Notes under the pieces: model-generated
Seen by the model: only the letters and a program-made list of their open reading frames with translations
Told to the model about the DNA's origin: nothing
Databases searched by the model: none
In this document: one piece after another, positions 38,370-55,600 of the stretch
Layout of the letters: each line of letters begins with the position of its first letter
How positions within the stretch are numbered: position 1 is the first letter of the stretch
Translations under genes and position numbers: made by a program
Source of the DNA: Eutreptiella sp. 'Long Island Sound 2002'
Taxonomy: Eukaryota; Protista; Euglenida
Assembly (NCBI GenBank): GCA_964036045.1
Contig: OZ038378.1
Span: 167,462,001-167,526,000, forward strand
Reading direction: 5' to 3'
Length of the DNA: 64,000 nt

Positions 38370-38480
38370 ATCCTTGAACCCAACCTTGACTCTAATGCCC
38401 ACCCCAACCCTCAGCCTACTCCTAACCCTACCCACAAACCTTACCCTTGACCCTAACCCTAACCCTAGCCCTAACCCTAA
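38370..38480 (+). repeat. Interstitial telomere-like (CCCTAA/CCCTAG)n tract, degenerate distally
   Basis: ..GACCCTAACCCTAACCCTAGCCCTAACCCTAA directly abutting the 1.15-kb element. Confidence 0.8.
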
Positions 38481-39628
38481 TCAAGACTGAATATTGGGAC
38501 CGAGCTAGTGGGGGAGGGAACATTAGTTATGACTGGTGAGGGACATCAAGAATGATTCACGCATTGATGGCTCTTGACAAAGTGAAATCAGCTTGCAAGT
38601 GAACCCCATCACCACGAGGCCCACTTTCAAGGCTTTTTGGACTTTTGAGGGGCCAAAATGCCCCAACATGGGCTCAAAATGGGCTCATTTCACCCGTTTG
38701 TGCACCCCAAATGATCTAGGATGAGGTTTGGAAAAATGCGTTTTTGACCCATTTTTTTTGACTCATTTTTGGTCCCAAAACAACCCATTTTCAAGGCATC
38801 TTGGGATTTTCGGAGGACCAAAATGGGCCACCACAAGCTCAAAACGGTCCAAAAACACTTGTTTTAGCGTCGCACATGGTCTAGGATCATTTTTGAGAAA
38901 AGTCATCTTTTTGCCCCTACTGGACCCCGTTGACCCATTTGGGCACCCACCTGTTTCGGTTTGAGCTTGCAGCTTGCCGCAGCCTAGTGGGCATAGGTAT
39001 TGGGGTCTAGGCGTCTGTTTGGGCAATTCTGAGGGGTGGAAACCCCAAAAAGTGGGGGGTTGCGGGTGGTGTAGGTGCCCTCGGAATCGCATTTTGAGCC
39101 ATGTAGCCAAAGATATGGCCTATTCTTGGTTTGTGGCTGTCGGCATTTGGAGCTTCTGGGGACCTTTTTGGGCCATTTCCGGGACATATCATGGAGTTAG
39201 AGGGCCGCAAAGAGCTCGTTGACACGGGGAAGTCAAGCCGCACTCGGAGTGTACCCACCGTTTCCCTTCGTTTGGCCGTTTTGAATGTGTTCTAGGGCTT
39301 TTTTTGCCGAAAAATGGCTGTTTTTGGCCATAAACTGCAGTTTTTGAAACTGAGGTCCGCCACTTGCGAATCCCGTTCCCGGCCGCCACCGTTGAGTTTC
39401 TTGCTCAAACTTTGTGTGATTGTACTTCACACCCATAGGTATCATGCACCAAAATTTCACCCGAATCCAAAGCACCTCGACAGAGGTCTGATTTTTGCCC
39501 ATTTTGCGCGTGCTGCTGCTTGCTTGCTGCTTGCTTGCTGCTTGCTGCTGCTGCTGCTAAACCTGGTAGGTCCACCCTAGACACTAAAAAGGGTTATAAA
39601 ACCAAGACTGGTTCCACCAGCTCGGTGA
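38481..39628. mobile_element. Solo full-length ~1.15-kb non-coding element (unit E) flanked on both sides by telomere-like repeats
   Basis: Begins TCAAGACTGAATATTGGGACCGAGCTGGTGG, ends CCACCAGCTCGGTGA, followed by CCCTAACCCTAGCCCTAG; highly similar to the units at 52676-56326. Confidence 0.75.
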
Positions 39629-39934
39629 CCCTAACCCTAGCCCTAGCCCTAGCCCTGCCCCTAGCTCTCACCCGAGGCTCGGGTTAGAGTGAGTGTTGGG
39701 GTCCAAAATGGAGAGCAATGATGCCCCCCCCCCCCCCCCCCCCCCAACCCACCACCAGATGATGATGAGAAGGTCATCAACGTACAGCATATCCCTTCGA
39801 ACACAAGAACCGTTGCAGTTTGAATGATGATTGCGCCAACCCACCACCCCAAATCGCCCCACACCCCCCAGCCGACCCTCCCAACCGCCCCCCCCCCCCC
39901 CCCCCATCGCCCCTCCCTGAACCCCCCCCTCCAA

Positions 39935-39970
<36 letters not shown>

Positions 39971-41562
39971 GGCCTTCGGCCCACTTCTACTGGGGGGGGG
40001 GGGGGGGGGTCGCGTATAAAAGCGAGGAGACGTCCCCCCCGTGGTGACCATGTGACGTTCCACATTGGTCCAGGAGAAGTAAATGTGCCCTACTGCGGGT
40101 TTTGTGGGAATACAGGGACATGTACATATAAGACGCACGCTGTCTGGGCCCAAAGGAGGGAAAACCAATTTAAACTTGCTTAAGTCCAAAATCCGACAGG
40201 CCAACTCATTGCAATGGCAGCATTTGCTTTGTTAAATTCACATTTTCACATCCTATGTGCAAGACAACCTGCACATGTTCTATGCAATTCTTGGACAACC
40301 CCACCCACCCAGACAGTCTCTATGGGAAGCGCATGCCCCAGATTTGATTTCTAATTGTGCACATACCAGTACAGCCCACACATATCACACATGTCACACC
40401 AACACCAGCAGCAAGTGATGGGCCTAGCTGTGTAAGTGCTAGCGATTCTAAAGGGCCGCACTAGCTGTGCACAACACACACAGGCTGTATGTAGTCCTGG
40501 GATGCATGCCACACTGCATTGCCTAGGGCTGGAGGAGGGAAAGCTATAAGTTGGTGTATGGGCTGGGGCATGGAAAGTGCAAGAGGGAGGGCTATGCAGA
40601 TGATTGTTCCCATAATTGAATGAAAGCACCACAGCTCTTCATTTCTTTGCACTAGGATGAGGTCTTGTTGCATGCTCAGGGTCCATGCATTCACATCGCT
40701 TGATTGTGTAGAAAAATTCTTGTGCACGTCATCCAATTGCATATGACCATGCATATTGAAGCACCACTGCCAAGGATCAGAACATTGGCGCACCACCTTG
40801 TTATGTACTGCTTGCTTGCTTGCCAATAGCGTGTTAAACTTGCAAAACATACCATTGCTGCAACTGGCATGATGCACCTCATTGGAAGTTGTGGAGCCAG
40901 TGGTGCATTGCATGACTGAGATGAGTGCAAGGAGCTTGTGCATCAAGGTTGAGAAGCAGGTAACAGATGTAGGGTGTTCAACAGCAAGAACAAGGACAAG
41001 GATAGCAAGGACAAGGAATATACAGGGAAGGCAGCCTTTGTACGGAAAGTAGAGACTTCAGAAGAGACACACATCAGCCGCCCATAAGCCCTATGGATTG
41101 AATGTTTATCCTGAGCATAGCTGCTTCAACATGAAGCCAAAGAATTAGGTTGTTTATGTGTGTCTGCCATGTTTGTCATTGACATGTTCCTTGCACATGG
41201 AACGCAGAATATCACTTCGACTAGTGCAACAGTGATCAACACCCTATAACCATCATCCATCCCGTTCACCCCCCAATTTGGAATACACACTATGGACCTT
41301 CTTTCCCCCACACCACGTCCCCATAGGAACAGACCACTATGGCCAAATGAGTCCCCTCAATCCCTCAAGCTGAGCCGTCTCCACCCTTGTGGTTGCCTGC
41401 AGGCAGTGAGTATCTGGCAGTGGCTACCGCTTGTCACATAGCCATCACTAGCCTCTAGGCCTTGGGCCCTTGCAGCATGTACCATACCAACACCAATGCT
41501 CTGTACATGCCTGAATCACACCAATACTGTTGCAGTGGAAATGATGATTGTGCCCCTAATTT

Positions 41563-41587
41563 GGAAAGTTCGTGTTGCCACCGAGCC
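41563..41587 (+). repeat. Left copy of 25-bp target-site duplication GGAAAGTTCGTGTTGCCACCGAGCC
   Basis: Identical 25/25 to 51328-51352; directly precedes the SL relic. Confidence 0.9.
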
Positions 41588-41612
41588 TTTCTGAGTGTCT
41601 ATTTTTTTTTTG
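41587..41612 (+). other. Genomic relic of the euglenid spliced leader
   Basis: CTTTCTGAGTGTCTA(T)10G versus the euglenid SL as I recall it, ACTTTCTGAGTGTCTATTTTTTTTCG; followed by a 7-nt UTR and ATG rather than by the SL-RNA intron. Confidence 0.88.
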
Positions 41613-41619
41613 TCATCAC

Positions 41620-44600
41620 ATGAACTCCATCTTCGCGTTCCTATTCTTTTGGGTGCTCATTACCACGTGTGTTCCCGTCGATGATAGCGACAATCTAGTC
41701 CCACATACCCCCTTGGCTCGTGAAAAAGTGAACATTGCCACCGACATAACCGCTTCTTTGGTGTTGAGGCAAGACCACTTCATTCCATCCCAAGCACATA
41801 TAACAGTGCATGGAGGTGTTACCATCACATTGGCCCACGATGTCAGTCTCACGATTGAGGGCGCAGTACATTTTGCTGGGAATCTGCAAAACCCCATCAA
41901 CATTGTTGGAGAGGGTGCAAATGGAGCGCAAGGTGGAGTGGTCCTTGACAAAGCAGGATCCTGCGATTTGGAACATGTAACCATTCAACATATTGGACAA
42001 AAAACTGCGGCGTTTCAAGTTGTTGGGAAAGAGTCCTCGGTTAAGTTTCGGAACGTCACATTCACCAAAATACCCGGAGACGCTTTGGTCGTCCATGCTG
42101 GACAGCTGAAAGAGTTCGTCAACAACACCTTCAAAGACGTTGTCGGTGCATGCCTTCATCTTCATGGCGACCTGCACAACGTTCATGTCCGTGGGTCCAT
42201 GTTTGATAATTGCAGTGATCATGCATTGTCTGCAATCAGGTTGAGCAAATCGTTGTTTATCAGTGATACGACCTTCAAAAATAATGGGAAGTACACCATC
42301 AATTTGGAGACGCCCCCGTCTTTCGAAATCCGAAGTAACCGCTTCGTCAACAACCAAGGAGTCCTTTCTTGCAAGCGGCACGCAATTACGGCTGCAATTG
42401 TGGACCCGAAATTGAATGATTATGTCTTCGCTGAGAATGACCTGAATGGGAACGTGGTAGATTACTCTTCGGATCCTTGGTCTAGAGGCAACGTCATCTA
42501 CATCCATGGGTGCACAATGATCATTGCCAACAACACACTGAAGAAGATGGACCGTGGCCCGCATCTCCTCAAGTTTTCAAGTTCAAGCATGATCAATTTT
42601 TTCGATGCACACATTCATATGGAGAGGAACACAATCCTTGAGAACTGGGGTTTTCAATTCATTGTCAACGTGGGTGGGTCTTTGTCGAGAGTTGTCATCC
42701 TGCGAAATATCTTCGCCAATCGCAACATCACTAGTTCAACGCCTTCAACGCCCAACTATGAAGTGGTAAACGAAGCGATGGAGGCTGAAGTGGATGCACG
42801 CATGAATTGGTGGGGTTGCTCGCTTCCTGAGGACGTGGGAAAGCGCATCCTCGATTTTGTGGATGGAGGTGAGAAGTATGGAGTGATAGAATATTGGCCA
42901 TTCCTCACAGAGGCGAATATGAAACAAGAGGTCACGGATTTGGGGGATGATGTGGTGGAGAGCCCTGTTGACCAACCCGATTCACCAGCCAAACAGATCA
43001 ACAAAGGGGAGATCATTGGCCAAGATGAAGAATGGCATGGGGAGCGAATTCTAAATGGCAACGTGTGGATCAACAAGGGTGTGATTTTAACGCTGCGAGC
43101 AAAAACACACATCCGCATGGCCAGAGATACAAACATCCACGTGGATGGCACCCTCTCGTTCGAAGGTACTGAGCAAGAGCCTGTTCAGTTTTCCCCAATC
43201 GGAGGCTGTAAGGTTGAATCAATCCACAAAATGGACCACTGGGGGGACATCACTTTCTCTGCATCTTCTGGCCTAACTATCATCAAGAATGCGAATTTCT
43301 GTGGAGGAGGTGCTGCGCCTATGCTCAATGGCAAAATGCAACCTCTTACCACGGCGATGCTGAAGTTCGAGGGAGCCTCTGCATTCTTGACAAATGTTCG
43401 TGTAACTGGCAGTGCCAGCAGTGGCATAATCGCAACCGCTGGCAACTTGACGGTCATCAACAATGCTTTCTATCACAATCGGGGCAATGCAATTGTGCAC
43501 TCGGCCCCAGGGCCACTGACTGTCAACAGTTCGCTATTGAAAGACACCCGTTCGTTCACAATAGTGATCATTCAATCGGAGTACACGATTGCTGGGAATA
43601 CTTTCGGCCTCAACAATGGAATTTTGTGCGTGCACCATCAGAGATTGGAGTGGTTCAAGGAAATGATCGATTTGGCAGGACCCACCTCCCTCTTCATTAA
43701 CAACATGGTTACTGGGAATCAGCATGCCTTTGCGTCAGAATGCTGGGGAGATAATTCACAGGAGTTGCTGCTGATGGACTTGGCAGATAAGCGGGTCAAT
43801 ATAGAAGGCAATATGTTCTCAGACAACAAATGCGAATCACGAATGGTACGCCGGCAGTATGCCATGTACTTCTTGATCGCCAACAACGCTGCATCCTTCA
43901 GTGAGAACTACGTGAACTCCAATTACGGGTCGATTTCAATGGAGCGGAAGGAGACCAAAGTGGCCTCATGGGACCATGAGCCTCAGGTGTTCAGATTCGA
44001 ATCCAACCGCTTCACAGACAATCAGTTCTTGCAGATCTATCTCCGCATTCCCGGACGCAGGGCCCTTGTCGTGAACAACATTATCCGAGACAATGAAGTT
44101 ACTGATGTGAGCAAATTACAGGAGACCGCAATCCTTGAGATTGTGGGTGGCAGCTTCACGTTGAAGCCCATGATCCTCACCAAAAACCAAATTCTGGGGA
44201 ATGAAGGGACGCTGCTTGCAGTGCGTCTGCACGACAACACCAAGGCCCTAGGAAACTGGTTCTGCAATCCTGTGATCAAGTACGAGTTGGCATTCAAGAA
44301 CTTGGACCCCACACTGTTCACTGGCATCAACAACTACTGGGGGATGTTTGGTGAAGAAGATGAGCGTTTGGTGATGGCCCGTCTCAAGCCTGTGAACGGC
44401 CACGTGCCTCGCAGATGGTACATGCATTGGATCACAAGGACGGGGGATGCTGCGAACGTGAAGAGAACCACGCCGCCCATTCCGCCGCAGGACAAGCAGA
44501 CGGCAGTCACTGTGGTCTCGCTGGGGATGGCCATCATGTTTGTGCTGGCGATGTGCATCCTTGTGAGGCACTGCGCACAGGGGCCATTCTATGGACGAAT

Positions 44601-44976
44601 GGAGTTCAACTCTGATGTCACGATGCAGACCGTGAGCCAGATCATGTCGCCGGGAAAGGACGGCAAATTGAATAAGACCGGCACTGTCATCAGGCAGTAT
44701 GATAGTAGGTCACCCACTGGCCGTACAGACATACAGGGTGGCATTGATGCCACAACTGCGGACAGTCCCAACAGCTCTGGCACACCCCACTCCCGGCCAA
44801 GGCCTCAGTCACTGTCCTTGTCCACATCGGTGGCAAAAGGACGTATGGACTACAGAGAGGGTGGTGAGGGCAGTAGCCCTGAGCAGGGGATGGCAAGCCC
44901 CTGCTCAGGTAGCAGAGGAGCAGGGGATGGCAAGCCCCTTCGCAAGCCGCGCTCCCTTAAGCAGGCGGAAGATTGA
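41620..44976 (+). CDS. Intronless type-I membrane protein (1118 aa) with two right-handed parallel beta-helix (PbH1) modules; retrogene
   Basis: Signal peptide MNSIFAFLFFWVLITTC; many N-x-F-x-x-N rungs; module-end motifs ARMNWWG..RILD..IEYWPF and NNYWG; TM AVTVVSLGMAIMFVLAMCILV; Ser/Gly/Pro-rich tail. ATG 41620 is preferred over the track start 41572 because it follows the SL relic. Confidence 0.88.
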   Translation: MNSIFAFLFFWVLITTCVPVDDSDNLVPHTPLAREKVNIATDITASLVLRQDHFIPSQAHITVHGGVTITLAHDVSLTIEGAVHFAGNLQNPINIVGEGANGAQGGVVLDKAGSCDLEHVTIQHIGQKTAAFQVVGKESSVKFRNVTFTKIPGDALVVHAGQLKEFVNNTFKDVVGACLHLHGDLHNVHVRGSMFDNCSDHALSAIRLSKSLFISDTTFKNNGKYTINLETPPSFEIRSNRFVNNQGVLSCKRHAITAAIVDPKLNDYVFAENDLNGNVVDYSSDPWSRGNVIYIHGCTMIIANNTLKKMDRGPHLLKFSSSSMINFFDAHIHMERNTILENWGFQFIVNVGGSLSRVVILRNIFANRNITSSTPSTPNYEVVNEAMEAEVDARMNWWGCSLPEDVGKRILDFVDGGEKYGVIEYWPFLTEANMKQEVTDLGDDVVESPVDQPDSPAKQINKGEIIGQDEEWHGERILNGNVWINKGVILTLRAKTHIRMARDTNIHVDGTLSFEGTEQEPVQFSPIGGCKVESIHKMDHWGDITFSASSGLTIIKNANFCGGGAAPMLNGKMQPLTTAMLKFEGASAFLTNVRVTGSASSGIIATAGNLTVINNAFYHNRGNAIVHSAPGPLTVNSSLLKDTRSFTIVIIQSEYTIAGNTFGLNNGILCVHHQRLEWFKEMIDLAGPTSLFINNMVTGNQHAFASECWGDNSQELLLMDLADKRVNIEGNMFSDNKCESRMVRRQYAMYFLIANNAASFSENYVNSNYGSISMERKETKVASWDHEPQVFRFESNRFTDNQFLQIYLRIPGRRALVVNNIIRDNEVTDVSKLQETAILEIVGGSFTLKPMILTKNQILGNEGTLLAVRLHDNTKALGNWFCNPVIKYELAFKNLDPTLFTGINNYWGMFGEEDERLVMARLKPVNGHVPRRWYMHWITRTGDAANVKRTTPPIPPQDKQTAVTVVSLGMAIMFVLAMCILVRHCAQGPFYGRMEFNSDVTMQTVSQIMSPGKDGKLNKTGTVIRQYDSRSPTGRTDIQGGIDATTADSPNSSGTPHSRPRPQSLSLSTSVAKGRMDYREGGEGSSPEQGMASPCSGSRGAGDGKPLRKPRSLKQAED

Positions 44977-45750
44977 AGAGTCTTACGGCTGGCAAAACGC
45001 CTCGTTTCGTTTCACTTTTTTGCCTAATGAGGATTGCATACGGCTGTCAGTTTGCAGCCAATTGCTGTTGGTGGTACTCAACAGTGGCGGGAGGGTATAT
45101 ACTGGGGGCTGGCATCTCGTTTGGTGAGAACATGAGTTGGTGAGAACATCTACACCGAACATGCCCCTAGTGCGTCGAGGGTTTCAAGTGTCTGCATACT
45201 GCTGTGGTGTGGATGCGATTATACTGTTGTCAGTATGCGATTGTACTATTGTGAGTATGCATTTGTAGTCTTATAAGTATGCGATTGCAGTATGGTGATC
45301 GTAGCCGTTTTCCATCTTCCAATCTTCCTGTTTTCCGGCTTCTTTTGCACTGGAAGCTGAGCAATGAACTGACGACTCAATTTCCCAGCTCCAGCTTATT
45401 GATGGAATTTGGATGCAAATTGCGATACGTGCTTGCTTGAGATTTGGTGGCAACAGCACCTCCAGCACCCCTACTGACCAGGTTTCCTGTTTGCTGTACC
45501 TGTTTGACACAGCACATTTTTTTCACATGGCGTATCGTCACCGTATCAATATCAAAGATCAGGAACAGCACTTAACATATCCAGTCTAAATTGGGCCAAT
45601 TGCTGCTTTGCTGCTTTGGTGAGGTCCTGTCATATCCGGCAAACACCATCGGATAACAAAGGCCCCCATGGGTATCCAAATGTAGCATTTCTGGATAATT
45701 TTTGGAACGCCTCAAACCGGCCCAACTGGACAGCGCAAATGGACTAACAT

Positions 45751-45782
<32 letters not shown>

Positions 45783-46260
45783 GGTCTCTCCATTGCCAAG
45801 CGCTAGAGCAGGCTCGCCCATGGGGGCCCCTGCCAAGGGAAAGGGGCATACACACGTGGGACGCAGGGTGCGGTAGGGATGCACACCCTGTGCATAGCCT
45901 TGTTGTAGGGTGCAGTAGGGATGCACACCCTGTGCATAGCCTTGTTGTAGTGCAGAGAGGGAGGAAAGGCCGCGCGGAGCAAAGTCCAAACATTGCTGCA
46001 CTGCGAACAATGCTGTAGAGAGGCGATGTATGTCAGCGAACACTATGGAGTTTGTTGAAATGATTGGGCATCACACACACACACAATCAGGCACACACAC
46101 ACACATACACACAGACTCCCAGACTTGTAGTGCAAAGAGGGAGGAAAGGCTGCGCGGAGCGAAATCCGAACATTGCTGGAGTGCGAACAAAGCTGTAGAG
46201 AGGTTATGTATGATAGCGAACACTATGGAGCTTGTTGAAATGATTGACGCGCCACACACA
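45783..46260 (+). repeat. Dispersed repeat with an internal ~175-bp tandem duplication, preceded by (AC)n
   Basis: GCGCTAGAGCAGGCT..CCCTGCCAAGGGAAAGGGGCATACACACGTGGG..GAAATGATTG; direct copy at 49915-50170. Confidence 0.8.
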
Positions 46261-46264
46261 GACT

Positions 46265-48801
46265 CCCACTCAGGCCACAGATCAGCAGCGCTGGGACTAC
46301 CTCTCCGGCATGCCATACTGATGGCGGGGGCTTTCACAGAAGTTATGGAAGGAACCCAACCTGGAAATGGTGGCCTTGGCTCTCAGGGTTTCTGGATCCA
46401 GCGTCGGCGCCCGGGAATGATGGGTTTACAGGGGCATTTTACAAAGCGTTTTCATCCCGCTTCTCCCCAGCTTTGCTCGATATTATCAGGGAGGTGAGGG
46501 AAACGGGCATCTTGCCCGCATCATGGTGCGAAGGGATGACGCGGTGTGTTCCCAAAGAACACGGGAGCATTGCAGTGTCCAAGCAGCGGCCCATAACGCT
46601 GCTAACTTGTAAAATTAAATGGCTCACGGGAGTGCTGAAGGTGACGCTCAATGACCTTGTGTCCTTCGTAGTGCCTAAGTAGCAGGCGGGGTTTATTAAA
46701 GGCAGGCAGATGGACGATCACTTGTTCTTTGTACAAAAAATATGGAAGTCAGGGCGCCAGGGTGCCTGGCTGGGTATTGCTTTTGCGAAGGCCTTTGACT
46801 CCACGAGTCATGCCCTGCTGGGTTTTTTTTGGAATTCCTGGGCGTGCCAGAGACGTGGTGTGCGGCTCTAATTCACTTTCTCAAGGGACCACTGTGCTTT
46901 TTGGTGGGTAACCAACTTACAGAATCGGCCCTTCAACCCGGCACAGAGATCAAACAAGGGGACACATTGTCCCCGACGATTTTCTCCCTATTGACAGCGG
47001 TGCTAATTTGGAAGGTCTTGGTCGAGTTTCCGCAGGTCCAGTCATTTCTGTTTGCTGATGACACACTGTTTGTCATCCCCGGAACTCCCGGACAAGTGAG
47101 AACTGCCCTAGAATCCCTACTGCTGCTCTTGCAGCAGTATGGTGAGGTGTCAGGGTGTTGGTTGAACATGGACAAATGCGGAGTGGTCTTTCAAGGGCCC
47201 GGTGCTCCTCCACCAGGAACGATACTATATGGGGTGCAGGTAAGGTCCAAAGTGAAATATCCAGTACTTGGTTGGGGCACATGACAGTCCTCGACCAATA
47301 TTAGGGGCCACTGGCTAAGTTGGTAGTCAAAGCACAATTTTTGGCCTTTTTGCCACTCAAAGCGGAAGAGAAAATCCAGGCACTCTATACCTGGGTGTAC
47401 CCGGTGCTCAGGCACATTGCGGTTCTCTTTTTTCCCACCCAGCAAGTCATCCGGAAAGCCAATATGGCTATGCGCGTAGCGTTGGGTATTTGGAGCTAGG
47501 TGCTACCCACTACTCATTGGAAGTTGCCTCACAACCGAGGGGGATATGCGTTCAACTTTCTGCTATGGTGCCACTCAGCGGCATATGTCAGAGCGCTGAA
47601 AGCACTGGAAGGGGGGGAGTTTAGGGATTGGGTGCGTTGGAAGGCTCCGAAGCTCCGACTTGACCCGGTGCACCTCAGAAGCTTTTCCTGGTTCCGACAG
47701 CCGCAGGACCAGTGGCCGGTGGTGGTCACTTCCTCGGTGGCATATTCGGTGTTCACTCACATCTGCCTGGGAGCCTGCCGGGGCCTGTTACATATTCCAC
47801 TCTGGAACTCCGTCTTTTTTCATCAGCCTGTCAAGTCTAGGGTCCTTGAAAACCGTTTTCGTATTTTTTACTGTCCGGCCCTTGTGGCCCAGGGGTTTCA
47901 GAGAGTGGCAGATTGTGTAACGGACACGGGGTAATTAGATGCAGGGATCCTCCCGCGCATCCCACGGTCATATAGAACTTTGTACGCTCGACTGTTGTTG
48001 CAGTATATTGATGCGGCTCATGGGAGGGAACCACGGCCGCAATGGCCAGCACTCCCGCCGCTGCGAGTATGGAAGCAATCTGGGGTCTTGAAGGAATGTA
48101 GGCAGCACTTGCGGGTGGACGCACGCCAGCCAGGGTCGGTATGGGAATCACGGCTGACACAGACAACCCCCCTGAAGCTTTGCGAGTTTGTTGTAATGGC
48201 GCTGTGGCGCAAGCTTCCGGTCGCACAGCGACTAGCACAATTTTAGGTGATGGAGGGACAAGATTGTCCATTGTGTGGGGTAGCTGAGGATCATGATCAT
48301 GTCTTCAAGAAATGCTTCTTTCTCCAGGACCCTCTGGCCCTGATCCGTAGCCTCTGGGGGTTGCACGTTTGCGACAAAATCTGGTACGAGCCTTCGCGGC
48401 TCTGCAGAGACCACTCTTTGGTATCGGTCACCACCATCCAAGGGTGGCTAGTTTGGACGGCGGTATATGCGCGTTGGCTCATCCGCTGTGAGGCGATCAA
48501 CATTCTCCGTTTGGATATGGCCACGGCCGTACTACAACGCTTCTACGTGGCTCTGCTCAGCTGGAAATCTTTGCCACCGGGGACTCTGCCACAGGAGGTG
48601 ATCACAACTACCTGTGGCTGCCTAAAGGATATTTTGAAACTTCGAGACAGACTGCACGGGGTGGCTACACAAAAGGGGAATCGCTTCAGGCTTATTCCTC
48701 TCACCCCCCCCCCCCCCAAGAAGCAGGGGAAGAAACAACCAGACAGGCAGGGCACGAGCGAGGGCCCTGAGGACCGCCTGAAATTCCGCTTCCCTCGCTG
48801 A
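46265..48801 (+). mobile_element. 5'-truncated, decayed non-LTR retrotransposon (L1/Tx1-like) reverse transcriptase with C-terminal zinc finger
   Basis: SAPGNDGFTGAFYK, QRPITLL, QAGFIKGR, FAKAFDS, IKQGDTLSP, LFADD, then LWRKLPV..CPLCGVAEDHDHVFKKC; stops and frameshifts; no endonuclease or ORF1. A degenerate RNase H-like tail may extend to ~49430. Confidence 0.88.
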
Positions 48802-49744
48802 TAAGCCAAATCCTGCTATCACATGGAAGTCATGGGGGTGTGAGGTGCCAAAAGTCGCCCCACAGGCAGTGCCATGCTCGGATTCGGCGGTCGCCACCCA
48901 AACTCGCACACGGGAGACTCGAACACCCCCCTCCTCCCTCGCCTGGCATAGTCTCGCAGGATCTTACACTGTATGTGGTGTACACCTCTTAGTGCCAAAT
49001 TGATCTGCATATACGCCTTCATGCATGGGCCAAGGATAGCCGGCAACAAAGGGATGGCACTCCGATCTTGGGAAAGGCACCCTCGTGGCGTTATATGAGC
49101 ATCTAGAGGGCAGGGCCACACAAGTGTATTGGCGCCTATGGGGCACATCAACAGTCAACCGTAGATACAAGAATTGCAGGAGCTCCTATACGTCGGGTTG
49201 AGATTAGCACGCCCAACGGACCCCCCCCCCCCCCGGAGCGATAGGTTTTACAACGGCCGCCTGGTAGTGACGCCCAGGATCGCCTGGCGATCTAGGAAGG
49301 AATGGCATCTGTATTGCCGGAGTCCACAATATACTCTGTACTCTGTGACTTAGCCCCTATCCCCCGACATTGCCGTCTTTTGGTGACGAGGCGGATGATG
49401 CAAATATGGCTAGGCGCGGACCGCTAATCGCGGAGTCGGTGTCGGCTTCAACCCCCCCCCCCCCCCCCGGCCACCGCTAGTGGAACCAGTGAGATTCAAA
49501 GGGGCGGGGGAGCGAGTGCCAACGAGGAGACAATTATTCCTGTGAGCCATGCATAGAGGGAGGAGCATACCTGAAACGCATGTGACCCCACGCCACATTT
49601 CTTCAAACGGAATCGGGGGCAGCCGGCACGCCGCTGTGTAGCCCCTGCGGATCCTCCATGACACTGTACCGAAATAAAATGGAGCATAGGCACAACCCAG
49701 AAACTCTTACACTGGTGGTTATGAAGGTAGGTTTCTAACCACAT

Positions 49745-49816
49745 CGGGTAGTAGCATACCGGAAACACACTTGACAACCACGCCATAGATCTTGGGTTCG
49801 AATCCCGGAGCGGAGG
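49745..49816 (+). other. tRNA-like Pol III promoter (possible SINE head or pseudo-tRNA)
   Basis: A-box-like TAGCATACCGG (49752), perfect B-box GGTTCGAATCC in a T-arm-like stem, T-run at ~49834. Confidence 0.4.
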
Positions 49817-49914
49817 GCACGCTGCCGCCAGGGTTTTTTCTTTTGTAGGCGGAAACAGGCGCGTCTCAGCACAGAGCCGAACACCAACACGCATGCAACA
49901 CAGCAGCGTCACGT

Positions 49915-50170
49915 CGGTCTCTCTATCGCCGAGCGCTAGAGCAGGCTTGCCCATGGGGGCCCCTGCCAAGGGAAAGGGGCATACACACGTGGGAAGCAGG
50001 GTGCGGTAGGGATGCACACCCTGTACATAGCCTTGTTGTAATGCAAAGAGGGAGGAAAAGTGGCGCGGAGCGAAGTCCAGACATTGCTGCCGTGCAAACA
50101 ATGTTGTAGAGAGGTGATGTATGTTAGCGAACGCTACGGAGTTTGTTGAAATGATTGGGCCACACACAGA
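49915..50170 (+). repeat. Second direct copy of the 45783-46080 repeat
   Basis: High similarity by eye to 45783-46080. Confidence 0.8.
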
Positions 50171-51305
50171 CGCACATGTATGCACGGACACACAAACACA
50201 CACGCACAAGCATACCGCCCCCCCCAAATGCCTCTAGCCACACATACATTTTTCCATACATATATTACACATACATTACCGGACAGGCCACCAAGGAGCG
50301 ATTGGTAATACAACTTAGACGGCCCAACCCCACCCTAAAATACAACCCCAAAAACGTTAAAACAGAAATTTCGGAAATTGGTGTGAAAATGGGTAATGGC
50401 ACATTTACAAAAGAGAACAATGTTACAATTGCCAATGCTAGGTGCGGGAGCATATCGGAACTATCGTACAAGACCCTGAGGGTGCTACGCACAAATAGCA
50501 TCAAAGAGAGTACAAAGCCGTATCGAGTGCAAAGCAGTGGAATGAAGTAGTATACACATAGGGAATCTGTAAAACAGCGTTCTACTTAGACGGCCGAACC
50601 CCCACACAGATACAATGGACTTCTCCGGCCTGGAAACCTCTGCCGGAGAATGAATTGACATGAGGGTTTGCACACGGTGTCCGGGGGGGAAAAAGATAGA
50701 GCGTATATACCAATGTAGGGAATAAAAATTGCACAGTTACATGATAAAAGCAATATGAGAAATTTATCCCAAGAATGGGTAAAATGCAGAGCAAATGCAA
50801 AAAAGATGGAAACACGTTTGTTTTATTCGAACACGGTTTTATCTGAAAAGGGAAGCAAAAATACTACATGTGCTAGTGGTTGCAGACAGAGCTGAAGAAG
50901 TACGTGTGCTGGACTAAGGTGTGCCTAACACTCTAGAACGAAGTTGCCTTCCGCAAGTTTGGAAGAGGCGTATCTGGTTTCCTTCCGCAAGGTCTCTCGA
51001 AATTTTTTGGGGGGAATATGACCGAAAAATGCGGGACTAGTGCCAACATAGCTACACCCCGGCACAGAGCGAGAAACAGTCCCTCTTCTCCCGCGCGGCC
51101 TCTGTGAGCGTCCAGCGACACTTGGAGAACCAAGCGGTGCGGTTGGAGACGCTCTCAGGCCGGTGGTTGACGCATGCCTAGTCTCAGAAGGAATGCCACT
51201 TGGCCACGGAGTCCGACATCGTCCGCTGCTGTACATACTCTTTGGGCCTCAGTGCCCGCGCACACCGGAGGCCGGATGGCCTGAACTCAATTTGGTGTCA
51301 GCTAC

Positions 51306-51327
51306 AAAATAAAAACGAAAAAAGAAA
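51306..51327 (+). other. Decayed poly(A) tail of the retroposed mRNA
   Basis: AAAATAAAAACGAAAAAAGAAA (18 of 22 A) immediately before the right TSD copy. Confidence 0.75.
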
Positions 51328-51352
51328 GGAAAGTTCGTGTTGCCACCGAGCC
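51328..51352 (+). repeat. Right copy of the 25-bp target-site duplication
   Basis: Identical to 41563-41587. Confidence 0.9.
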
Positions 51353-51973
51353 AATTTTCCACCCGAACCCATAGAAAAACTTCTTTTGCCTATGGGGGTT
51401 ATGCCATGCAATGACATATAGCTCAACAGGAATCTTGGTTTAGGCAAAGGCAAGGACCCAACCAATCTCTCCGTTTCTCCACCCCAGGGATAGTGCCCCT
51501 TGGCCAAGACCTTTGGGACACTTCTTCCCCAAGGTGGGGGACCCGGAGATGACGAGATGACTGATATCCCCAAGGCACGCTCGGAGTGTGTTTCTTGACA
51601 CTCTCTGGTTACTGGATAACTCTGCTCTTGAATACTCCTTTTTCTTTTACCACAGGTGGGCTCTTTGTGAGCCGTGGCAGGACAAACCACTTAGTGTACA
51701 GTAGCCCCGGGGGGGGGGGGGTCCTTGTATGCAAACCCCCCCCCCTTGGGTTTTGAAAGATAGTGGTGCTGGGTCGGCCACCAACAAGTGTCTCTAGAGA
51801 AAACTGTCCGGCGCCAAAGGCGCCACATTTTTTTCCCTACTATGTGTTTATACTCAAAATACTCAAATTTTTGTAGAGAATTCATATTTGTGTTAAAACA
51901 ACAAGAAAAAATTTTGACCTGAAGGAGGGCTACAGGAGGGCTGCAGGGCTGCAAGCCCTAACAGCAACCCTAA

Positions 51974-52282
51974 TCAAGACTGAATATTGGGACCGAGCTG
52001 GTGGGGGAGGGAACATTAGATATGAATGGTGAGGGACACCAATGAGTTACACCTTGAAGGCCGTTGACAGGGTGGAATCAGCTTGCAAGTGATCCCCTTC
52101 ACCACAAGGCCCACTTTCAAGGCTTTTGTGGACTTGTGAGGGGCCAAAATGCCCCAAAATGGGCTCAAAATAGGCTCATTTCACCCGTTTGTGCACCCCA
52201 AATGGTCTAGGATGAGTTTTGGAAAAATGCGTTTTTGACCCATTTTTGACCCATTTTTGGTCCCAAAACAGCGCATCTTCAA
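51974..52282. mobile_element. Truncated copy (unit A) of the 1.15-kb element
   Basis: CCCTAA|TCAAGACTG start; near-identical to the start of unit B; breaks off into the 12-bp array. Confidence 0.8.
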
Positions 52283-52675
52283 GGTTCCCTAATTGGTTCC
52301 CTAATAGGTTCCCTAATAGGTTCCCCAATAGGTTCCCCAATGGGTTCCCTAATAGGTTCCCTAATAGGTTCCCTAATAGGTTCCCTAATAGGTTCCCTAA
52401 TTGGTTCCCCAATAGGTTCCCCAATAGGTTCCCTAATAGGTTCCCTAATAGGTTCCCTAATAGGTTCCCTAATAGGTTCCCCAATAGGTTCCCTAATAGG
52501 TTCCCTAATAGGTTCCCTAATAGGTTCCCCAATTGGTTCCCTAATTGGTTCCCTAATTGGTTCCCAAATTGGTTCCCCAACAGGTTCCCCAATGGGTTCC
52601 CTAATAGGTTCCATAATAGGTTCCCCAATAGGTTCCCTAATAGGTTCCCTAATTGGTTCCCTAATAGGTTCCCTA
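52283..52675. repeat. 12-bp minisatellite (GGTTCCCTAATA)n, about 33 copies
   Basis: 393 bp of contiguous units with variants CCCCAATA and CCCTAATT; each unit contains CCCTAA or a one-base variant. Confidence 0.95.
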
Positions 52676-55600
52676 TCAAGACTGAATATTGGGACCGAGC
52701 TGGTGGGGGAGGGAACATTAGATATGAATGGTGAGGGACACCAATGAGTTACACATTGAAGGCCGTTGACAGGGTGGAATCAGCTTGCAAGTGACCCCCT
52801 TCACCACAAGGCCCACTTTCAAGGCTTTTGTGGACTTGTGAGGGGCCAAAATGCCCCAAAATGGGCTCAAAATAGGCTCATTTCACCCGTTTGTGCACCC
52901 CAAATGGTCTAGGATGAGTTTTGGAAAAATGCGTTTTTGACCCATTTTTGACCCATTTTTGGTCCCAAAACAGCCCATTTTCAAGGCATTTTGGGATTTT
53001 CGGAGGACCAAAATGGGCCACCCCAAGCTCAAAACGGTCCAAAAACACTTGTTTTAGCATCACACATGGTCTAGGATCATTTTTGAGAAAAGTCATTTAT
53101 CTGCCCCTATTGGACCCTATTGACCCATTTGGGCACCCACCTGTTTGGGCTTGAGCTTGCAGCTTGCCGCGGCCTACTGGGCTTGGGTACGGGGGTCTAG
53201 GCGTCCATTTGGGCAATTTTGAGGGGTGGAAACCACAAAACGAGGGGGGTTGCGGGTGGATTAGGTGCCCTCGGAATCGCGTTTTGAGCCATGTAGCCAA
53301 AGATATGGCCTATTCTTGGTTTGTGGCTGTCGCCAGCCAACCTGCACAAAATTTGGGGCTTGTGGGGGCCTTTTTGGGCCGTTTCCGGGACATATGGTGG
53401 AGTCAGAGGGCCGCAAATGGCTCGTTGACACAAGAAAGTCAAGCCGCACATGGAGTGCACCCACCCTTTCCCTTTCCTTGGCCGTTTTGAATGGGTTCTA
53501 GGGCTCTTTTGGCCCAAAAATGGCTGTTTTTGGCCCTAAATTGCAGTTTTTGAAACTGAGGTCCGCCACTTGCGACACCCATTCCCGGCCGCCACCGTTG
53601 AGTTTCTGGCTCAAACTTTGTGTGGTTGTCCCTCACACCCATAGGTATCATCCACCAAAATTTCAGCCGAATTTGAAGCACCACGACAGAATTCTGATTT
53701 TTACCCATTTCGCGCGTGCTGCTTGTTGCTGCTTGCTGCTTGTTGCTGCTGCTGCTAAACCTGGTAGGTCCACCCTAGACCCTAAAAAGGGTTATAAAAC
53801 CAAGACTGGTTCCACCAGCTCGGTGACCCTAGCCCTAACCCTAACCCTAGCCCTAGCCCTAACCCTAATCAAGACTGAATATTGGGACCGAGCTGGTGGG
53901 GGAGGGAACATCAGCTATGACTAGTGAGGGACATCAAGAATGATTCACGCATTGATGGCTCTTGACAAAGTGAAATCAGCCCGCACGTGAACCCCATCAC
54001 CACAAGGCCCACTTTGAAGGCTTTTTGGACTTCTAAGGGGCCAAAATGCCCCAACATGGGCTCAAAATGGGCTCATTTCACCCGTTTGTGCACCCCAAAT
54101 GGTCTAGGATGAGGTTTGGAAAAATGCGTTTTTGAGCCATTTTTGACCCATTTTTGGTCACAACACAGCCCACTGTCAAGGCATTTTGGGATTTTCGGAG
54201 GACCAAAATGGGCCGCCACAAGCTCAAAACGGTCCAAAAACACTTGTTTTAGCGTTGCACATGGTCTAGGACGATTTTTTAGAAAAGTCATCTTTTTGCC
54301 CCTATTGGACCCTGTTGACCCATTTGGGCACCCACCTGTTTGGGCTTGAGCTTGCAGCTTGCCGCAGCCTAGTGGGCATAGGTATTGGGGTCTAGGCGTC
54401 CGTTTGGGTAATTCTGAGGGGTGGAAACCACAAAAAGTGGGGGGTTGTTGGTGGAGTAGGTGCCCTCGGAATCGCATTTTGAGCCATGTAGCCAAAGATA
54501 TGGCCTATTCTTGGTTTGTGGCTGTCGGCATTTGGAGCTTCTGGGGACCTTTTTGGGCCGTTTCCGGGACATATCATGGAGTTAGAGGGCCGCAAAGAGC
54601 TCGTTGACACGGGGAAGTCAAGCCGCACTCGGAGTGTACCCACCGTTTCCCTTCGTTTGGCCGTTTTGAATGTGTTCCAGGGCTTTTTTAGTCCAAAATT
54701 GGCTATTTTTGGCCATAAACTGCAGTTTTTGAAACTGAGGTCCGCGACTTGGGAATCCCGTTCCCGGCCGCCACCGTTGAGTTTCTTGCTCAAACTTTGT
54801 GTGATGGTACTTCACACCCATAGGTATCATCCACCAAAATTTCAGCCGAATTTGAAGCACCACGACAGAATTCTGATTTTTACCCATTTCGCGCGTGCTG
54901 CTTGCTTGCTTGCTGCTGCTGCTTGCTTGCTGCTGCTGCTGCTGCTGCTGCTGCTAAACCTAGTAGGTCCACCCTAGACACTAAAAAGGGTTATAAAACC
55001 AAGACTGGTTCCACCAGCTCGGTGACCCTAACCTTAACCCTAGGGCTAAGCCTACCCCTAATCAAGACTGAATATTGGGACCGAGCTGGTGGGGGAGGGA
55101 ACATCAGCTATGACTGGTGAGGGACATCAAGAATGATTCACACATTGATGGCTCTTGACAAAGTGAAATCAGCTTGCAAGTGAACCCCATCACCACAAGG
55201 CCCACTTTCAAGGCTTTTTGGACTTTTGAGGGGCCAAAATGCCCCAACATGGGCTCAAAATGGGCTCATTTCACCTGTTTATGCACCCCAAATGGTCGAG
55301 GATGAGGTTTGGAAAAATGTGTTTTTGACCCATTTTTGACCCATTTTTGGTCCCAAAACAGCCCATTTTCAAGGCATTTTGGGATTTTCGGAGGACCAAA
55401 ATGGGCCGCCACAAGCTCAAAACGGTCCAAAAACACTTGTTTTAGCGTCGCACATGGCCTAGGATCATTTTTGAGAAAAGTCATCTTTTTGCCCCTACTG
55501 GACCCCGTTGACCCATTTGGGCACCCACCTGTTTCGGTTTGAGCTTGCAGCTTGCCGCAGCCTAGTGGGCATAGGTATTGGGGTCTAGGCGTCCGTTTGG

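Follow-up and report, generated by a model that had tools for sequence, protein, structure and literature searches.

In the euglenid Eutreptiella sp. 'Long Island Sound 2002', a 64,000-nucleotide (nt) stretch of contig OZ038378.1 (assembly GCA_964036045.1; G000:C1:167462001-167526000 in the genome-wide searches), referred to here as the window, contains an intact, intron-free gene headed by a relic of the spliced leader (SL). Together with a train of transposon sequences, this gene is enclosed by the two copies of a 25-bp target-site duplication (TSD), situated at 41563-41587 and 51328-51352, both on the plus strand. The copies of this 25-mer, GGAAAGTTCGTGTTGCCACCGAGCC, are identical at 25/25 positions and 9,740 nt apart. 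The insert between them has two unequal parts. Its left portion, 41588-45750, is gene-like and unique and makes up 43% of the insert; it comprises the SL relic, a short 5′ untranslated region (UTR), an open reading frame (ORF) of 1118 codons and the first segment of a 3′ UTR. Transposon sequence from three families accounts for 56%, and the insert ends in an A-rich tract immediately before the right TSD copy.

The duplication is exact and unique. At up to two mismatches the 25-mer occurs only twice in the whole 2.28-Gb genome, both times in the window, and 0 of 100 shuffles yield any match to it. Identity ends at the TSD borders, the adjoining 30 nt agreeing at 7/30 and 6/30 positions, and the right copy is followed beyond 51352 by ~120 nt of unique sequence. 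The original prediction, made from the letters of the window, had claimed a perfect 25-bp TSD bracketing 9.74 kb, an SL-like sequence directly after the left copy, an uninterrupted 3.36-kb ORF, and an A tract of 18/22 directly before the right copy (51306-51327). All four are borne out, and the genome-wide count sets the 25-mer apart from high-copy repeats. The combination of duplication, SL edge, ORF and A tract is real and non-random. The European Nucleotide Archive assembly record ERZ25074135 (locus L064) is collinear with 31576-54975 (23.4 kb), with 0 mismatches and 5 indels. Short-read data were available as contigs over the stretch 45400-51399. A contig of run X4 spans 51221-51399 and beyond with 0 differences, and hence contains the right junction; a 4,246-nt contig of run X1 ends at 45742, and its left part, outside that stretch, would by arithmetic begin at ~41530 and so cross the left junction. 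Run X1 has the character of whole-genome DNA, its depth over unique sequence being ~25-37, while X4 is low-depth DNA under another organism label and covers the long interspersed nuclear element (LINE) sequence of the insert too; the junction-covering contigs thus carry two different organism labels. Apparent joints within the X1 DNA contigs were considered as alleles and rejected as repeat or poly-C artefacts with 20-nt sides.

Directly after the left TSD copy, the sequence TTTCTGAGTGTCTATTTTTTTT (41588-41609) matches the SL core at 22/22 positions. The published SL of E. gracilis is ACTTTCTGAGTGTCTATTTTTTTTCG (PMC6242988), and the same core is present in the SL-RNA genes of this genome. The relic as a whole (41588-41612, plus strand) holds the exact 22-nt core, lacks the first AC, and ends in T10-G where the canonical leader has T8-CG. 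It is the sole SL-like site within the window. Here, then, the species' own SL is DNA-encoded at the head of a protein-coding gene, away from any SL-RNA-gene context. A 5′ UTR of 7 nt (41613-41619) separates the relic from the ATG at 41620.

The ORF (41620-44976, plus strand) runs for 1118 codons with 0 stops; each of the other two frames has 50. Its product is predicted to be a beta-helix type-I membrane protein, with a signal-like N-terminus (residues 2-21), right-handed beta-helix repeats (Beta_helix, PF13229, E=5.9e-23), and one transmembrane segment near residues 960-986 followed by a tail of ~135 residues. Among 1.8 billion representatives, only remote beta-helix relatives of the protein were found; the homologue searches returned the protein itself, remote beta-helix proteins, paralog exon fragments and nothing beyond these. 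In the genome, the ORF DNA and the first 774 nt of the 3′ UTR each occur once. The sole recognisable paralog, on C5, shares 32-54% identity and is broken into at least nine exon-like pieces across ~42 kb, from which it follows that the gene family normally has many introns while the copy in the window has none. The genome was searched for the intron-containing parent that the original prediction would lead one to expect; neither such a parent nor any close one is present in the genome assembly or the DNA contigs. Consequently, the copy in the window would be an orphan retrogene and the sole copy of its gene. The X1 DNA contig runs unbroken over the ORF at single-copy-like depth, which makes it unlikely that the sample holds another, nearly identical copy of the gene.

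The gene copy is apparently transcribed, as judged from run X6 (33 Mb of contigs), which is guessed to be RNA. Segment A of the 3′ UTR (44977-45750, plus strand), which is unique, is reached by contigs of this probable RNA run to at least 45719: two records cover 45400-45719, and nothing unique follows in the downstream sequence of the insert. Present-day transcripts thus seem to end at ~45.72-45.78 kb. Exact-protein lookup found no transcript contig encoding the 1118-residue form; for a 1134-residue form starting at GTG, the same lookup returned a genomic contig only. Five estuary metatranscriptomes (X7-X11) contain 8-17% of the sampled words of 41500-51400. Of these, X7 holds in 45400-51399 just short, mismatched pieces of LINE tail and of a 650-bp repeat, and its remaining words probably lie in the ORF or UTR.

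Transposons in the 3′ part of the insert

Beyond segment A, the insert is almost entirely repetitive. The statements on copy identity for its LINE and its 650-bp repeat derive from a genome search of its 6.3-kb 3′ part in which 40 of 1,926 candidates were scored. A (CA)n microsatellite (45751-45782) forms the junction between the UTR and a cluster from one LINE family. Two 5′-truncated, (CA)n-tailed LINE 3′-end fragments (45782-46112 and 46125-46260) are followed by a ~3.9-kb copy, likewise 5′-truncated (46261-50208), of the apurinic/apyrimidinic endonuclease (APE) type, with an RVT_1 domain at 46829-47281; all of these lie on the plus strand. Fuller copies of the family encode a zf-RVT domain and show a weak Exo_endo_phos match. 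The family carries a (CA)n tail, and its 5′-truncated copies typically sit behind (CA)n in tail-to-head arrays. Such (CA)n-tailed pile-ups, in the window (45751-50208) as at loci L025-L033, resemble microsatellite-specific LINEs. The window copy differs by ~9-11% from a consensus of seven copies, a figure that subfamily structure or CpG decay may inflate, and it has no sibling above ~85% identity among the matches listed. Two other readings of this region were discarded. The direct repeats 45782-46112 and 49915-50203 had suggested long terminal repeats, and are instead the tail-to-head 3′ ends of 5′-truncated LINEs with (CA)n tails. A single large autonomous element, with the beta-helix ORF as its ORF1 and the reverse transcriptase (RT) downstream, was rejected, since the ORF and UTR each occur once in the genome and LINE copies at other loci differ in what lies upstream.

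Three further pieces complete the insert. Segment B (50209-50312, plus strand) is CA/TA-rich and unique, its only genome match being itself. It is followed by one arm of a high-copy 650-bp repeat (50313-50959, strand unassigned), 94-97% identical to other copies among the matches listed, which has the canonical left end and is cut at the hairpin tip. The usual unit, as seen at L020-L024, is hairpin-like, with a 653-nt arm, a ~75-nt spacer containing CCCTAACCCTAA, and an inverted 381-nt arm. Other copies continue into this CCCTAA-containing spacer and the inverted arm, whereas the window copy has neither; the rest of the hairpin was sought downstream of the TSD and not found there. The last piece, R3 (50960-51327, plus strand), is SINE-like, that is, it resembles a short interspersed nuclear element, with a canonical 5′ start, an A-rich terminus and a variable tail. 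The family has more than 200 candidate copies (78-90% identity), every one of which begins at window 50960. No other copy exceeds 90% identity to that in the window, which bears a private deletion of ~440 nt at 51227-51229, where about 22 copies have the extra sequence. The first ~40 nt of R3 resemble the spacer motif of the 650-bp repeat (TTCCGAAATTTCGGAAG). A scan of 38-55 kb with Rfam gave nothing credible.

R3 changes the identity of the 3′ edge. The stretch 51007-51305 had been taken as unique 3′ UTR sequence until separate searches revealed the R3 family, and with this the original view of the sequence before the A tract falls away: it is a dispersed repeat. The A tract itself had been read as a relic of an mRNA poly(A) tail. 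Other R3 copies, however, align at their 3′ ends as far as 51312-51326 and take in most of the tract, so that the supposed relic is largely the conserved R3 terminus. Just the final ~11 nt (GAAAAAAGAAA) extend past the conserved R3 end and could be a true tail remnant. The larger claim of a retroposed trans-spliced mRNA accordingly survives in part. Its SL edge, TSD and intron-free ORF hold, but a single complete, mature mRNA with a UTR of 6.3 kb does not describe the insert, given its transposon share of more than half and the end of X6 coverage at ~45719.

The flanks of the insert are also repetitive. To the left, a dispersed repeat, R4 (41282-41559, strand unassigned), lies outside the insert and stops 3-6 nt before the TSD. 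It has 367 candidate copies at 77-85% identity, every match to which stops at window 41553-41563, and it terminates in ...CCCCTAA. Units of ~1.2 kb occur on both sides of the locus (38438-39668 and 52945-55000) at 89-97% identity. Closer in (52186-52723; 39720-40010), there are a 12-nt tandem array and long poly-C/poly-G tracts arranged as inverted repeats.

Origin of the insert

An RNA-mediated insertion of some kind is very probable. It is favored by the exact SL edge, the unique TSD, the A-rich 3′ edge, the intron-free ORF in contrast to a multi-exon paralog, the many SL cores of the genome that stand apart from SL-RNA genes, and the presence of APE-type LINEs in the genome. Since the SL and the R3 tail both abut one unique TSD, they must mark the two ends of a single integration event. 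Both edges are accounted for if the template was RNA, while a DNA breakpoint would need two coincidences. We infer the reverse-transcription mechanism, the order of events and the loss of the parent; the TSD, the SL and R3 edges, the transposon anatomy, the single-copy status and the multi-exon paralog are observed. In the reconstruction that we prefer, one event of target-primed reverse transcription would have inserted a single SL-capped RNA at TTT|GGAAAG and made the 25-bp TSD. The bottom-strand nick at this site would expose ...CTTTCC-3′ as a primer that could pair with an A/G-rich template end. The template would be a trans-spliced and fully cis-spliced transcript of the beta-helix type-I membrane-protein gene, whose 3′ end fell within the A-rich tail of the SINE-like R3 and was not a plain mRNA poly(A); cDNA synthesis would have been primed on or beside this tail. 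Such a transcript would be a 3′-extended one, from a source locus since lost, and would have contained the old LINE copies, segment B, the 650-bp repeat and R3 from the outset. The intron-containing parent would have disappeared later, leaving the copy as the sole gene.

What leads to this preference is the contrast between old-looking contents and a pristine duplication. Transposons nested after the insertion predict 2.5-4.5 TSD differences; 0 are observed, with P(0) ~0.01-0.08. The old-looking LINE and R3 within a 25/25 TSD therefore favor a long transcript that already carried its transposons. One lost source locus would also explain at a stroke why the ORF, segment A, segment B, the LINE copy and R3 are all without close relatives. 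Several observations pull the other way. The LINE age may be inflated, as noted above. No parent is found, and after a recent event the source would have to have been lost rapidly. Among the contig ends listed, none came from an empty site. The T10-G end of the relic departs from the canonical leader. Finally, the probable RNA run X6 leaves the LINE, segment B and R3 uncovered; the 9.7-kb isoform is not seen in it, and would therefore be rare. On balance, the 3′-extended transcript is the account we adopt tentatively, as one that falls a little short of being probable.

Closest to it stands a chimera made by template switching. RT would have been primed on R3 RNA, run to the R3 5′ end, jumped to an RNA of the 650-bp repeat, copied it to its 5′ end, and, after a second jump into the 3′ region of the mRNA, gone on as far as the SL cap; the cluster of (CA)n-tailed LINEs would either have been joined in the same way or have entered the UTR microsatellite later. 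This would account for the fact that mRNA, LINE and R3, whose polarity is known, share the plus strand within one TSD pair, and that the units are 5′-complete, the 650-bp unit having its canonical left end and the mRNA extending up to the SL. The canonical first base of R3 falls exactly at the cut in the 650-bp unit, with GGAAG microhomology at the junction. As a tailed, non-autonomous RNA, R3 is moreover a usual sort of template for LINE machinery, and the probable RNA run suggests a native mRNA end near 45720-45780. Yet several jumps are needed in one event, no A-run marks the distal end of the mRNA part, and the unique segment B goes unexplained. No source R3 exceeds 90% identity and none has the private deletion. 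Were the LINE cluster nested later, an old cluster within a perfect TSD would be as problematic as before. Template switching is thus somewhat unlikely, and the 3′-extended transcript is retained ahead of it.

The history closest to the original prediction, in which a plain polyadenylated mRNA with a ~1-kb 3′ UTR was retroposed and all transposons arrived later, R3 at or in its poly(A) tail, explains the SL, the TSD and the intron loss equally well. Nesting in a UTR microsatellite would be natural for a LINE family that targets (CA)n, the last 11 nt of the insert could be residual poly(A), and with an old event the loss of the parent would be unremarkable. It is nevertheless distinctly unlikely: it meets the improbability of old-looking LINE and R3 sequences within an unblemished TSD, it finds no A-rich remnant at any internal junction, the R3 tail adjoins the TSD directly, and the 650-bp repeat must have landed exactly at the first base of R3. 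Old transposons inside a young TSD would be no difficulty if a 9.7-kb genomic segment, such as an older retrogene locus with its neighboring transposons, had been copied or moved at the DNA level with duplication of 25 bp, a length that is at the long end for LINE events. Its edges, however, coincide to the base with the 5′ region of an SL and the A-rich tail of a retroelement, and no source copy exists in the genome; we regard such an event as very improbable. That the structure is an artefact of assembly or a chance repeat, as its repeat-rich surroundings might suggest, is scarcely credible in view of the second collinear assembly record, the junction-covering short-read contigs under two organism labels, and the outcome of the shuffles.

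Spliced leaders across the genome and comparison with known systems

The relic in the window is one of many. The 22-nt SL core occurs 4,471 times in the genome, compared to 0 times for a control. About 1,328 of these cores have the upstream context of an SL-RNA gene, and ~3,100 are without it, which makes SL-tagged retroposition look widespread. Copies of the SL-RNA-gene type form arrays spaced at ~9-60 kb, mostly near chromosome ends (for example C20:43.08-43.63 Mb, C1:29-458 kb, C3:164.1-164.7 Mb). When 30 cores were sampled, 10 had the exact SL-RNA-gene context with its splice-donor motif and 2 (L034, L042) proved to be variant SL-RNA-gene copies. The other 18 are fused to unrelated sequence, including SL-headed multi-copy families, relics within (TG)n and one triple-SL stack. 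The stack, at L046 (G000:C1:1041251-1044272; SL at C1:1042751-1042772, minus strand), places three head-to-tail SLs before unrelated sequence, one full, one with G for A and one 5′-truncated. By analogy with dinoflagellates, it is a probable signature of repeated rounds of retroposition. Dispersed multi-copy families that start exactly at the SL, usually after AC, are found at L047, L048, L050 and L062 and in the pairs L045/L053, L054/L057 and L058/L061, which suggests that SL-headed repeat families spread as trans-spliced RNAs. SL-headed inserts of ~1.0 kb and 0.27 kb at L049 and L060, with (TG)n on both sides, hint at microsatellite-targeted retroposition. A survey for TSDs at 20 other SL-relic loci, with 1.5-kb flanks, gave nothing usable except two relics inside (TG)n.

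SL relics are a built-in tag of retroposition that has so far been exploited almost only in dinoflagellates. The locus described here would be an SL-tagged, composite, orphan retrogene, of a kind first described in dinoflagellates that appears to be unreported in euglenids: the SL-relic retrogenes that turned up in literature searches are all from dinoflagellates and their relatives, no report from Euglena was found, and the 2024 genome paper makes no mention of SL relics. Taken together, a junction-complete euglenid example and roughly 3,000 SL cores outside gene context suggest that the part played by RT in gene duplication, intron loss and genome expansion is open to direct counting in a 2-Gb genome. 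The locus also indicates that retroposed RNAs of the host can terminate in the tail of a retroelement, that a gene can come to survive solely as a retrocopy, and that an A tract beside a TSD is not necessarily an mRNA tail. The full proposal is offered with reserve. The host (named E. gracilis in the analysis) may recycle trans-spliced RNAs by the thousands, as dinoflagellates do, with this locus as a junction-complete example: a read-through or multi-template RNA of 9.7 kb, SL-capped and primed at a SINE-like tail, would have become the sole functional gene copy after loss of the parent. We consider this joint claim possible, if still shy of an even footing with its negation.

Several known systems provide points of comparison. 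SL-relic 'mRNA recycling' in dinoflagellates was reportedly described by Slamovits and Keeling in 2008. As in the retrogenes of those organisms, a genomic SL stands directly upstream of an intron-poor gene and marks the reverse transcription of a trans-spliced mRNA, and stacked relics, such as that at L046, occur elsewhere in the present genome. Unlike the dinoflagellate relics (PMC5585692, PMC6050394, PMC12014239), the locus belongs to the Euglenozoa in both lineage and SL, keeps both junctions with a 25-bp TSD, and has a retroelement tail instead of plain poly(A) at its 3′ end. Processed and orphan retrogenes made by the LINE-1-type machinery of mammals are characterized by intron loss, a TSD, an A-rich 3′ end, a nick between T-rich and purine sequence, and at times a sole surviving functional copy. 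The euglenid locus shares the TSD, the A-rich 3′ end and the nick, apparently also the intron loss and the status of sole functional copy, and differs in that no parent is available, its tail is not pure poly(A) and 56% of it is transposon. Chimeric retrocopies arise by template switching, as in U6-L1 and mRNA-L1 chimeras and in the end-to-end jumping of the R2 RT. Here, too, several co-oriented RNAs lie in one TSD pair with a tailed retroelement at the 3′ end and 5′-complete parts upstream; the parts are, however, more numerous than usual, the junctions have no A-run, and no source copies were found. In L1 3′ transduction and related transposon-terminated transcripts, retroposition carries along the flank of a read-through RNA whose end lies at an A-rich or poly(A) site further downstream. 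The preferred reconstruction resembles this in that a read-through RNA would have been retroposed together with flanking sequence, with the roles reversed: a host mRNA carries downstream transposons, instead of a LINE carrying host flank.

Within the Euglenozoa, the obvious comparison is with SLACS, CZAR and CRE, the SL-gene-specific LINEs of trypanosomatids (PMC10161547), in which a retroelement is likewise linked to SL sequence. An element of this class was considered for the present locus and rejected, the target 25-mer and its flanks not being SL-gene sequence. SLACS, CZAR and CRE insert within SL-RNA genes, whereas here the SL lies inside the TSD, heading an mRNA copy that entered a unique site outside SL sequence.

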